Shown: piece by piece, positions 9,133 to 36,852 of the stretch | Layout: the number at the start of each line of letters is the position of its first letter | Numbering within the stretch: the first letter of the stretch is position 1 | Assembly (NCBI GenBank): GCA_904063045.1 | Contig: CAJFCJ010000003.1 | Span: 2,528,504-2,592,503 of the forward strand | From: Dimorphilus gyrociliatus | Taxonomy: Eukaryota; Animalia; Annelida | Direction: 5' to 3' | Length of the DNA: 64,000 nucleotides | Program-made: the position numbers and the translations under genes | The notes under the pieces: model-generated | Told to the model about the DNA's origin: nothing | Seen by the model: only the letters and a program-made list of their open reading frames with translations | Database searches by the model: none

Positions 9133-9471
9133 TAGATGGCGCTATAGGTGATAAATCTATATCGTATAACAGTCGCTGACATCTAGGAATCCCATGAGGT
9201 AGTAAATTGACCGAACCACGAGAAAACTAGCCTTAATATATAACCTACCCATTTATGATATTATAAACGAAACATTTCAATAGACTTCTCATATATATTC
9301 TATTATCAAAATATTTTTCAATTATCATTTTCTTCAACTTGTGTTAAAGTTTATAGTTTAAGCAACTGAGAGGTAAGTAAGCCAGGCGATAGATGGCGCT
9401 AAAATTAAATTGGAAAGACTACTTAAAAACAATACACTTAAAAGCAATTATATTTGGACGCCACCTAGGAA
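9133..9471. promoter_or_regulatory. Cluster of three CTCF-like motifs between neurogenin and GPCR1
   Basis: TAGATGGCGC on + at 9133-9142 and 9390-9399, and the reverse-oriented GACGCCACCTAGGAA at 9457-9471. All match the YAGRKGGCR core of the CTCF consensus. Confidence 0.5.
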
Positions 9472-9518
9472 TAAAAGTAACACTTAACGGAAGTTTTTCA
9501 TGAATTATTGGTGACAAG

Positions 9519-35100: not shown

Positions 35101-36852
35101 TGTCCGAACCCAGCAAGATAACGACAATTTCTGCTACAGAAGAACAGTCATCTCTCAAAAAATTGAATAGAGAGCACAGGTTAATGATCCAACTCATAAT
35201 AATTACAATATTATTTCTTTTATGCTGGACACCTGGATCTACCGCAGCAAGATTTATTGGCTATGAAGATCATGATAAAAGTCCTATCGGAACTATTTCA
35301 ACGGCAGCTATTCTGTTAAATAGCGTAGTCAACCCTTTTCTGTATATATTACCCAACACCCTTCTAAAGGCTCAACTAAAAGAGATGATACGAAGCTGTT
35401 TCTACAAGAGGAGATTATCATAATAACAATATAAAGTATTGTTATTTTCTTAAAACAATTCCTATCTCTCTATTAACTTATTAATTAACTCTGAAATACT
35501 GTTTATCCTTCACATACACTCAAATTATTATTATTGTTCTTTGCAATACACTGTTACGTTTGCTCTAGTCATTAAATCTAAACATATAAACATATACTCT
35601 ATACAGATTCTAGTCATCTCTATATATTATAGTTTTGTTATTAGTTTTTGGCATAGTTGCTAAGGTCACAATATTTTTTGCGAATGAATCTTAAATTAAT
35701 GCGGAAATATGAATCAGTAACTATCATCAATTCAAATTATCTATTATAGAAAGGAAAAATATGATTATATATCAGTCATGTGATTTACGATATAATCTAC
35801 GAGATGTGTAATCATACGCTGACATAAAGCAAACAACATAGAAAGAACTATTATGATCAAAGATTAAGTATTAAACGTTAACTCTTTATAAAGCAGAATT
35901 TTCAATTAACTCTTTTTAAATTAGGTAAATACTGATAACAATATAAAGATATTAAAGTCCATACCAGAGACATTACGCGCCTTTCGAAAGACTATGGGAG
36001 TGAATGTATTTTTGTTGTTGTTGAATGCATGATTGTAGATTAGTAGAGATTGAACAAAGATTCAATAGTAAAGCCTCTAATGCACCCAGAGAAATTCGAC
36101 GTAGAAATAGTACATAACTTAAAAGCTAATCCATAAATCAGTGAGATATCAACAATAAGATGTCATTAGATTAAGAAAAGTATCTAATCAATTAATCGAC
36201 ACGGTACCAAGTGCAACAAAATAAGAGTATAATTATACATAAACACAATCAACTTACCTAAAACTTTTCCACAGCTTAAACATTCAGCTTGCCAAGGAAA
36301 CATTGACTCAATACCTTTTTCTTTATACTTGTTAAGTACGCAATCTGGTAAACCCCATTCTTTCAAATTCAATCTTGGATCATCATCTTTAATTTTAACA
36401 TGACTCAAGTCGCCATCATTTGAAACTGTTTCCATTCCTATTGACATATTATCCGAAAATTTTGGTTTTAGAAATTTATTATGAAATTCATTATTTCCGT
36501 CAGAGGATTGTTTATCATCTTTTGGCTTTAAACTTTTTGCTTCCTCATTGTAGTCCGCCTTCTTGATTGAAAAACATTTCGCCACATCTTTAGTTTCAAT
36601 TTCTTGATTAGTCTTCTTAATAGTTTGATATTCAAGAGATGGTTGGTTTAATTGGTTTTCTTCAAAATTTTTCAAATTCTGAGCAATCTTTTTTTCAAAA
36701 TTGATTGTCTTAGATGTTTTAGAATGGCTTGGAGCAGGAAGTCCAATAAATTTTCTAGTTTTTGGCCGATTTTCCATGGAGAGCTGTTTTCTTAATCGAG
36801 GCATGCCTTGATTATTGGTTACCAAACCGTCTGATGATTTAGATTTAAACAT
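11109..36852 (-). CDS. POLQ: DNA polymerase theta (helicase + A-family polymerase), 14 coding exons, 1970 aa
   Basis: Phase-consistent exons 36852-36258, 26327-26173, 24686-24422, 24308-23788, 23702-22827, 22769-22474, 22393-22214, 15545-14112, 13988-13234, 12222-12157, 12092-11796, 11726-11602, 11525-11381, 11311-11109 total 5913 nt. Motifs: [12 protein letters not shown], Walker [78 protein letters not shown]. The exon 8 acceptor could alternatively be 27 nt upstream (exon start 15572, same frame). Confidence 0.95.
12438..12854 (+). CDS. Small nested gene in POLQ intron 9, putative stand-alone TRADD-N-like domain protein (138 aa)
   Basis: Clean ATG-TGA ORF filling most of the 1011-nt intron (12223-13233), with a candidate 5'UTR acceptor at 12377-12378. 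The C-terminal segment [52 protein letters not shown] resembles, by eye, the GS/C-(hydrophobic strand)-...-SG.L...(L/V)..E..KELG...L pattern of invertebrate TRADD-like N domains. Confidence 0.55.
   Translation: MERGSYSKRLTSETESRDATISLKIGEIVLSDDLSDEEGRSRYLHALFHIPTLLRDNFDNCQKRLDDILKQHKSSLLSVETEIGSGIVEIRIKDENPVALQVAFSSGQLLKDVKSIIISKEFTKELGILDLTLDIQLL
15826..16749 (+). CDS. Orphan class A GPCR, paralogue 2 (nested in POLQ intron 7; 307 aa)
   Basis: Colinear with paralogue 1 from ATG 15826 (ORF-track start 15727 is a GTG). Motifs [29 protein letters not shown]. Confidence 0.92.
   Translation: MELPYFAAISLHIAFIYGILANSLVVYLYIVNKQCTSDQKSFIISLNMADLLAMILGYITFILTNYVDVLNSSTWLFICNSLTFFLSAIMHCSAIQLSVVAVYRYLTVTKSSFFKLKLTKLQSFLLITGVWIFSFIPTIIAVFGGWCELTFIIPKKICTFNYPRCLSYAVFNIVLYTILPIIIVTVSYFALFLSVRKQRKKVFNIQEVSQATACSTSNKRSLKSKVENKEYRLMIQLAIITVIFMICWIPGSTVGRFVGYEKGSKEFVGYVSSGFFVLNSAVNPIVYLLPNNHLRSKLKEMFSCCCR
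17627..18550 (+). CDS. Orphan class A GPCR, paralogue 3 (nested in POLQ intron 7; 307 aa)
   Basis: 7TM pattern; [29 protein letters not shown]. Confidence 0.92.
   Translation: MDYSFGSLVVMHTYCIYGILANFLVIILYIRNRQCSLDQKMFIISMNLTDFIVAILTYFVFSITQYGNIDENQTSVSLCTGASLIGNWLLHTSAVQLCLIAFHRLICVIKPTLCKIWFCQRNCYIIIISTWLLMTIPSIVPIALDYCAFGYYPTKNMCSFKYPECVGFTMTIIILFTVIPIIFVAVAYSAIFVAVRKQKMKLRPENNSINSISSFSTSKKLAKRETSNKEFQLLIQLVAITAVFMITWTPGSTIGRFVGFTKDESTRLVYILGGIISVNSAVNPLLYLLPNSVMRKDLKNILLCRWK
19748..20686 (+). CDS. Orphan class A GPCR, paralogue 4 (nested in POLQ intron 7; 312 aa)
   Basis: 7TM pattern; [28 protein letters not shown]. Confidence 0.92.
   Translation: MAVPVIGMICLHIIFSFSLLANLLVIILFYKNKQCSLDQKLFIISLNVSDFLAVLLSYPIFIITQHIAVQGNPTAESACIGMAFLTGWILHSSVIQLCLVAFHRLISVAKPSISKNLFSKRNCLLMIATVWILCGVPVTVVVSTNKCKLEYFPTKNLCTFNYPKCFGYTLFNIVTFTIIPFLFVTICYFLLYYFVKKQRKKVRQADTVQRTVSSHSGAITVSTKGNYQKEIKSDSKEFRLLIQLIIITAIFMICWTPGSTIGRFIGYKEKESLLGYVLGGMIVLNSAVNPFVYLLPNPYMRRQLKQFILCRK
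21124..22020 (-). mobile_element. Internally deleted, degenerate mariner (Tc1/mariner) DNA transposon, 897 bp
   Basis: 30-bp terminal inverted repeats TTAGGKTCACCCTRAAAGTTTTACCCGTTT at 21124-21153 and 21991-22020 (2 mismatches), flanked by TA on both sides. Minus-strand transposase remnants: HTH region ([10 protein letters not shown]...[13 protein letters not shown]), WIPYQL (WVPHEL motif) and [12 protein letters not shown], with frameshifts, stops and the catalytic core missing. Confidence 0.92.
29881..29914. repeat. (TA)n microsatellite
   Basis: About 17 perfect TA units. Confidence 0.9.
31407..31579 (+). promoter_or_regulatory. Two full CRE palindromes and a TATA-like element upstream of the NHL gene
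   Basis: TGACGTCA at 31407-31414 and 31556-31563, a half site at about 31547, and TTATAAG at 31573-31579; the ATG is at 31616. Confidence 0.5.
31616..32917 (+). CDS. Coiled-coil + NHL-repeat beta-propeller protein (TRIM2/3/71-like C-terminal half), nested in POLQ intron 1
   Basis: 433-aa intronless ORF with a BBC-like coiled coil ([41 protein letters not shown]) and repeated NHL units ([22 protein letters not shown]; SPTYLTID...[15 protein letters not shown]; FPNGITSD...YVADWG). No RING or B-box in the ORF. Confidence 0.85.
   Translation: MPTMTKREKLKTSMSSKDIHIDVIEHPTRQMNENEKEYMKKIEKTCNEAKLRIRKAATDALESIRRHERVLLEQVEHEYSSAVKNMLNDHRPDTNIIFIQESLSMEFGKIMCNSVESASPRARAMTVGSCTVRKSSLEPIKQETMKYRCGSDTDMLQLRSSVHSVHWRLEKEGSAVGDINCPNDLVLVENEARLAVADRGNCRIQLFDANNGSCIKELANGITTRRLAVSASGNYITTTDHGVKIVNPHTNSISTFGNTKKLKNLLPQPCAIGITKKGTVIISDTQQKTISVFSEEGKHLFDFDKRSSPLDSPTYLTIDRKNRVLVSDSWGSVIKIFDASNGKYINSVGQLTRDGRHLKFPNGITSDNRNSFYVADWGAHIVTKFEDDAFSSCLMTRADSLKNPAGVCVNKSGNKLFVAEYSDSHSAISCLNI
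33698..33730. repeat. (TA)n microsatellite
   Basis: About 16 TA units. Confidence 0.9.
34488..35423 (+). CDS. Orphan class A GPCR, paralogue 5 (nested in POLQ intron 1; 311 aa)
   Basis: 7TM pattern; [29 protein letters not shown]. Confidence 0.92.
   Translation: MALLPLSVLISLQALFLFGIIANLIVIILFVRQKKYSFDQKVFVVSVNLADLLALFCSFIVVIITQFMTLSMSGMNLFFCNALAYIVTCTLQSSATNFCIVAFHRLLSVARPATSKMIFTPKKCLFITICGWIFGFMPTSMALLTGWCTMKYFSGKHLCTFYYTRHISYTIFVLVVFTGIPIVYVSVTYFSLFLIVRKQRRKIQVSEPSKITTISATEEQSSLKKLNREHRLMIQLIIITILFLLCWTPGSTAARFIGYEDHDKSPIGTISTAAILLNSVVNPFLYILPNTLLKAQLKEMIRSCFYKRRLS

Follow-up and report, generated by a model that had tools for sequence, protein, structure and literature searches.

Oriented copies of a CTCF-type motif at the promoters of related receptor genes raise the question of whether these genes share a looping-based mechanism of promoter choice, or whether each copy simply belongs to the promoter next to which it lies. 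Such a locus is found in the annelid Dimorphilus gyrociliatus, in a stretch of 64,000 nucleotides (contig CAJFCJ010000003.1, positions 2,528,504 to 2,592,503; the whole stretch is referred to as the window), where the heptamer GCCAYCT lies upstream of the ATG in four of five paralogous G protein-coupled receptor (GPCR) genes, GPCR1 to GPCR5. A first-pass annotation of this DNA suggested a receptor array with a promoter-choice architecture similar to that of the vertebrate clustered protocadherins or, alternatively, a conserved activator site specific to the family. Here, we propose that all four elements belong, as ordinary copies, to the commonest promoter motif of this genome, which is of CTCF type and already published, and that they most likely act locally, a reading to which we assign a probability of approximately 80%. 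It is carried by the identity of the motif, its genome-wide abundance, its oriented spacing to TATA boxes, and its retention at paralogous promoters.

Motif copies at the receptor promoters

In four of the five paralogs, a sense copy of GCCAYCT precedes the ATG, by 59, 70, 86, and 63 bp, at precisely the positions first described:

9457..9471, + strand: GPCR1 motif copy GACGCCACCTAGGAA; GCC at 9460, -59 from ATG 9519, with TATA-like ATAAAAG 4 nt later
15753..15767, + strand: GPCR2 weak motif copy CTGCCACCTAGATAT; GCC at 15756, -70 from ATG 15826, with TATA-like TATTATAT 3 nt later
19659..19673, + strand: GPCR4 motif copy AACGCCATCTCTATC; GCC at 19662, -86 from ATG 19748
34422..34436, + strand: GPCR5 motif copy GACGCCATCTAGGAA; GCC at 34425, -63 from ATG 34488, an exact match to the published 12-mer

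Compared to this 12-mer, TRRCGCCATCTD, no mismatch is found at 34421 (GPCR5) or at two reverse copies to the left of GPCR1 (9133 and 9390), one at 9456 (GPCR1), and two at 19658 (GPCR4); the GPCR1 site also has one mismatch to TRRCGCCAYCTD. The GPCR2 site (CTGCCACCTAGA, 15752) retains only the core and is weak relative to the 12-mer consensus, and in the 880 bp upstream of GPCR3 (ATG 17627) every possible site has at least three mismatches. The heptamer occurs 17 times in the window, compared to 5.0 +/- 2.5 in shuffled sequences (none of 100 shuffles reached 17), and the probability of matches at four of five paralogs within a 40-bp, strand-specific slot is approximately 4e-9 at the window's own background rate.

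No further alignable sequence was found among the five upstream regions beyond the motif itself. Since these regions cannot otherwise be aligned, while the proteins are only 40-61% identical in pairwise alignments, the sites have been retained and are not merely young. Such retention at four old paralogs makes a function likely, and, as far as the sequence can tell, the receptor sites are probably functional. The elements of paralogs 1 and 5 (GACGCCACCTAGGAA at 9457 and GACGCCATCTAGGAA at 34422) do agree at 14 of 15 positions, as had been noted; however, this agreement is not private to the two genes, since it mostly reflects the fit of both to the genome-wide consensus TRRCGCCATCTD (one and zero mismatches, respectively).

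A second near-site, ATGCCATTTGAGGAA, was observed at 19688-19703 (+), -57 from the GPCR4 ATG, which corresponds to the motif slot of GPCR1 and GPCR5. It may represent a decayed ancestral GPCR4 site, with the copy at -86 as its replacement.

A common promoter motif of the genome

The D. gyrociliatus assembly comprises 77.9 Mb in 349 scaffolds (Martin-Duran et al. 2020, Nat Ecol Evol, PMC7854359, Supplementary Table 1). In that study, the CTCF motif was reported to be the most abundant one in ATAC-seq peaks, mostly in promoters, as single sites near transcription start sites. A CTCF orthologue was found to be present, which was proposed to serve gene expression instead of architecture, and neighboring sites had no clear directional arrangement (PMC7854359). 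The assignment to CTCF was based on motif similarity, and a later review restates the same account. In the header of the peak table of PMC7854359, the de novo motifs include AGATGGCGCY, TRRCGCCATCTD, CCGATAGATGGC, and CCGCTAGATG, as well as a separate YY1-like motif, CSGCCATNTT. According to our tally of a 1% sample of this table, motif 1 is present in 33 of the 105 listed peaks (approximately 30%), including 16 of 57 promoter peaks; no peak of the present locus was found in this sample. The receptor elements share with this published motif the genome, the sequence (AGATGGCGCY/TRRCGCCATCTD), a probable location near gene starts, and the occurrence of mostly one copy per promoter (PMC7854359).

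Whole-genome counts, for which we used the assembly of 77,897,245 bases in 349 contigs with the reversed motif as a control, gave 2,499 copies of GCGCCAYCT (79 in the control), 2,386 of ACGCCAYCT (424), and 525 of CGCCAYCTAG (48). RCGCCAYCT has approximately 4,900 copies in the genome, one per 16 kb, and nine in the window, where four are expected (P = 0.02). Receptor genes from outside the family carry the motif as well: of 15 further intronless 7tm_1 genes whose start could be defined, 5 have it no more than 200 bp from the ATG, with sense copies at the unrelated loci L019 (-98) and L022 (-42) and antisense copies at L006, L009, and L018 (-138 to -155). In the window, non-GPCR places with the motif are 1753, 12084, 45516, 47871, and 50504, including:

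12084..12095, + strand: motif copy GGACGCCACCTG, 350 bp upstream of a + strand open reading frame (ORF) at 12438-12854, in a different intron of the POLQ gene from the one that hosts three of the receptors
45516..45527, + strand: motif copy AGGCGCCACCTA
50504..50526, + strand: TATA-coupled copy GCGCCATCTATTGTATAAA, a textbook case, just past a C2-domain exon

The ORF at 12438-12854, which lies in an intron within the polymerase domain of POLQ, has no Pfam match. Within 600 bp downstream of the 50504 copy, no ORF that begins with ATG reaches 40 codons, and 50504-50526 could mark an internal promoter or a short first exon that has escaped annotation.

Orientation and spacing to the TATA box

The combination of CGCCAYCT and TATAAA separated by 4-7 nt occurs 70 times in the genome with the motif in sense orientation, compared to 26 times in antisense (P = 8e-6) and 31 times in sense at a spacing of 16-19 nt (P = 1e-4). 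This orientation bias is confined to the 4-7 nt spacing, and no overall bias was observed for an exact TATAAA within 30 nt of the motif (104 sense versus 98 antisense). Since the gap sequences are diverse, the TATA-coupled copies do not form one repeat family. Oriented, TATA-abutting placement is a genome-wide subclass to which the receptor sites conform; the fixed orientation pointed out by the first-pass annotation thus holds at four of the five promoters, but it is a general property of TATA-adjacent copies and not a special one of this locus. A strict rule that the motif is always sense to the nearest gene is unsupported, since a search for divergent genes on the far side of the antisense copies of L006, L009, and L018 gave no convincing candidate. 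While PMC7854359 reports no orientation rule relative to genes, we observed here a sense bias together with a 4-7 nt spacing to TATA, as well as a site kept in one slot by four paralogs.

A probable local role at the promoter

What a bound protein would do at these promoters, and where it would sit relative to the true start sites, may be pictured as follows. A sequence-specific zinc-finger factor, most likely the worm CTCF orthologue, would bind in a fixed orientation just upstream of the TATA box or initiation region, perhaps at roughly -45 from the start, and would keep the promoter accessible or aid assembly of the transcription machinery. Tandem duplication would have passed the site on together with the ancestral promoter, and selection would have kept it as the remainder of the promoter diverged. 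The copies at 9133 and 9390, in reverse orientation, are further members of the same class, situated in a region shared with a divergent basic helix-loop-helix (bHLH) gene.

Several observations weigh against this picture. No clear TATA box follows the motif at GPCR4 or GPCR5, and all six sites examined (the four promoter copies and the two reverse ones) lack the 5' CCA triplet that the vertebrate CTCF core has, so that CTCF is a candidate factor. In addition, four sense copies among five paralogs exceed the base rate (P = 0.024 if 28% of promoters carry one and P = 0.0013 if 13% do), and the corresponding fraction among other 7tm_1 genes is only 2 of 15 (Fisher P = 0.014). Considering that paralogs are not independent trials, the above-base-rate number in this family (P of 0.001-0.02) is attributed to shared ancestry.

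Candidate binding factors

CTCF is the best candidate for the factor, judging from the match of the motif. The CTCF-like identity suggested by the first-pass annotation is supported: the ten 3' positions of the vertebrate core CCASYAGRKGGCRS (YAGRKGGCRS) are matched, R/Y wobble included, and PMC7854359 names the motif CTCF, whereas the full 14-bp core is not reproduced, the six copies matching 8-11 of its 14 positions. The worm sites also differ from the vertebrate ones in lacking the CCA triplet and in being promoter-proximal rather than located at domain boundaries.

The alternative that survives best, which we nevertheless regard as rather unlikely, keeps the local promoter role and assigns it to another zinc-finger protein, such as YY1/Pho or a lineage-specific factor, with a resemblance to CTCF that is only partial. 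It draws on the incomplete core and its missing triplet, on the fact that the assignment in PMC7854359 rests on motif similarity, and on AGATGGCG, which overlaps the YY1 consensus as well. Indeed, YY1/Pho sites (AAGATGGCGGC) share AGATGGCG with the worm sites and are likewise promoter-proximal and oriented. However, the invariant GCCAT core of YY1 is not preserved, as GCCAC stands at both 9460 and 15756. This change disrupts the YY1 core yet suits the purine wobble of CTCF when the two matrices are compared. GCCACCT is the form read at two of the four promoters and in about one in four copies across the genome, the PMC7854359 table lists CSGCCATNTT as a distinct YY1-like motif, and extended de novo forms from the same source, e.g., CCGMTAGATGGC, fit 13 of the 14 CTCF core positions.

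Reverse copies and the promoter-choice reading

Vertebrate clustered protocadherins have a conserved promoter element with a CTCF site, together with the HS5-1 enhancer, and choice takes place among their promoters. The worm locus is similar to them in having paralogous neural-type membrane receptors, like-oriented CTCF-type sites at four of the five promoters, and opposite sites to one side. Under a mechanism of this kind, the oriented promoter sites would pair by loop extrusion with the opposite sites at 9133 and 9390, and one receptor would be expressed per cell. The opposite-orientation copies to the left of the receptors are real (TAGATGGCGC is present at both 9133 and 9390), and they are listed here with a third reverse copy and the neighboring gene:

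8241..8720, - strand: NeuroD/atonal-type bHLH gene, divergent from GPCR1; Pfam HLH, PDB NeuroD1 E = 2.7e-18, TATA and CCAAT boxes near 8800
9133..9144, - strand: perfect consensus copy TAGCGCCATCTA between the bHLH gene and GPCR1, ~330 bp upstream of the TATA box of the bHLH gene
9390..9401, - strand: perfect consensus copy TAGCGCCATCTA, back-to-back with the GPCR1 site, 60 bp apart
19450..19461, - strand: near-consensus copy TAGCGACATCTT with one mismatch, ~200 bp upstream of the sense copy at GPCR4

Looping is favored by the convergent geometry (read by the CTCF convention, the copies on the left count as forward and those at the four promoters as reverse), by the preservation of a site at four of five paralogs, and by the existence of a CTCF orthologue (PMC7854359). 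However, the presumed anchor lies just 69 bp (9390) and 326 bp (9133) from promoter 1, both copies being within the 750-bp gap that separates GPCR1 from the divergent bHLH gene. Motif pairs 40-70 bp apart were found genome-wide in back-to-back arrangement at 18-20 loci, face-to-face at 9, and in tandem at 14, with a modest excess of back-to-back pairs (P = 0.02). The arrangement of the reverse copies thus adjoins a promoter and recurs elsewhere; it is not a distant anchor. Moreover, like-oriented sites also occur at non-GPCR places, neighboring sites have no directional arrangement in PMC7854359, and among the receptors themselves one of the four sites is weak and one paralog has none at all.

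The genes, too, are organized differently from protocadherins. They are independent and intronless, without variable and constant exons, GCCAYCT is absent from all five receptor ORFs, and no distant enhancer with opposite sites was found. The worm locus further differs in its interspersed unrelated genes, in an anchor that abuts promoter 1, and in a motif that is generic to the genome; POLQ exons break up the cluster, as do a + strand ORF that carries a site itself, a relic of a mariner element, and a gene with NHL repeats. The protocadherin-like architecture is unsupported, with three of its structural hallmarks (shared constant exons, an exonic second site, and a distant enhancer with opposite sites) absent, and we consider loop-based choice among these promoters very unlikely. 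Equally little credence is given to the variant in which the four retained sites and the 9133/9390 pair form an annelid choice or looping module built from the generic promoter motif. Site-dependent expression of one receptor per cell would, if true, have no precedent outside vertebrates; no observation made here leads in that direction.

Some additional features of the reverse copies and of the bHLH gene were observed. One and the same 61-bp back-to-back motif pair is present on contig 15 (776232-776292) and, twice and inverted, on the small contig 307 (781-841 and 6120-6180), as might be the case for a haplotig or after an inverted duplication of recent date. GACATCTAGGAA at 9178-9189 (+), between the two reverse sites, equals the GPCR1/GPCR5 element minus the three bases GCC and may be a decayed additional copy. 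Just 5' of the ATG of the bHLH gene (8740-8810, -) are a classic TATA box, a CCAAT box, and the palindrome GCGCATGCGC, which fits motif 5, CGCATGCGCA, of PMC7854359. No CTCF-type site was found within 300 bp of the bHLH gene.

Family-specific and functionless alternatives

An activator site private to this receptor family could be invoked for the presence of the motif at four of five paralogs at a similar distance and for the AGGAA that follows the core in paralogs 1 and 5. This possibility, also raised by the first-pass annotation, is hardly credible: 12 of the 15 shared positions are those of the genome-wide consensus, thousands of copies exist elsewhere, approximately 30% of the peaks tallied in the 1% sample carry the motif, unrelated 7tm_1 genes and non-GPCR places have it too, and the nearest out-paralog of the family (L006) and two decayed copies lack a sense site. 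Functionless leftovers of the one promoter from which the paralogs derive, or chance, are just as improbable in spite of the weakness of the GPCR2 site, as it would be very unlikely (P of approximately 4e-9) for four cores to stay neutrally within a single 28-bp slot between such diverged genes with unalignable flanks.

The receptor genes and their genomic setting

The five receptor genes are as follows:

9519..10442, + strand: GPCR1, intronless class-A receptor, 307 residues (Pfam 7tm_1 E = 1.6e-29 and alignment)
15826..16749, + strand: GPCR2, 307 residues, 61% identical to GPCR1, within a POLQ intron (Pfam and alignment)
17627..18550, + strand: GPCR3, 307 residues, intact, without the motif, within a POLQ intron (Pfam and alignment)
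19748..20686, + strand: GPCR4, 312 residues, within a POLQ intron (Pfam and alignment)
34488..35423, + strand: GPCR5, 311 residues, past POLQ and the NHL-repeat gene (Pfam and alignment)

All five ORFs are complete and intronless with their own stop codons and belong to the rhodopsin class (Pfam 7tm_1, E of 1e-26 to 1e-31). The class-A landmarks are kept, namely the N in transmembrane segment (TM) 1, the D in TM2, the R of the DRY position, CWxP, and NPxxY. In all five receptors, the DRY triplet itself is replaced by YR or HR (ALYRF/AFHRL), with CWxP and NPxxY intact. The best solved-structure match is the cholecystokinin A receptor (E = 1.7e-15), and the atlas neighbors are mixed class-A clusters. 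As no close characterized relative was found in these two comparisons, the label of orphan receptors is a fair one.

The window is AT-rich (~30% GC), and a gene on the opposite strand runs through the receptor region:

11109..24647, - strand: POLQ gene (Pfam DNA_pol_A, POLQ_helical, DEAD), hosting GPCR2-4 in its 15518-22811 intron
11109-11270, 11557-12045, 13121-13975, 14090-15517, 22812-23666, and 24351-24647, - strand: POLQ exons identified

GPCR2-4, three intact genes, are nested antisense in this single 7.3-kb intron, in a genome whose introns are mostly short; large introns of D. gyrociliatus tend to contain open chromatin (PMC7854359). The same intron harbors a decayed, frameshifted mariner-type transposase (21228-21870, -), and the GCCACCT at 21269, which falls within it, was rejected as a chance match. 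POLQ is separated from GPCR5 by the NHL-repeat gene, and the motif copy at 32674, which falls within an NHL exon, was likewise set aside as a chance match. With three receptors inside a POLQ intron, unrelated genes interspersed, and neither shared exons nor exonic sites, the locus is not a dedicated receptor array.

Implications for CTCF-type sites in Dimorphilus

Through the present finding, a published class that numbers several thousand sites gains four receptor promoters. Beyond what was reported in PMC7854359, the finding contributes the orientation preference of TATA-adjacent copies with their 4-7 nt spacing, as well as the survival of the site at diverged paralog promoters. Both additions fit a local, promoter-bound role better than an architectural one, and they may be of interest for work on the ancestral role of CTCF.

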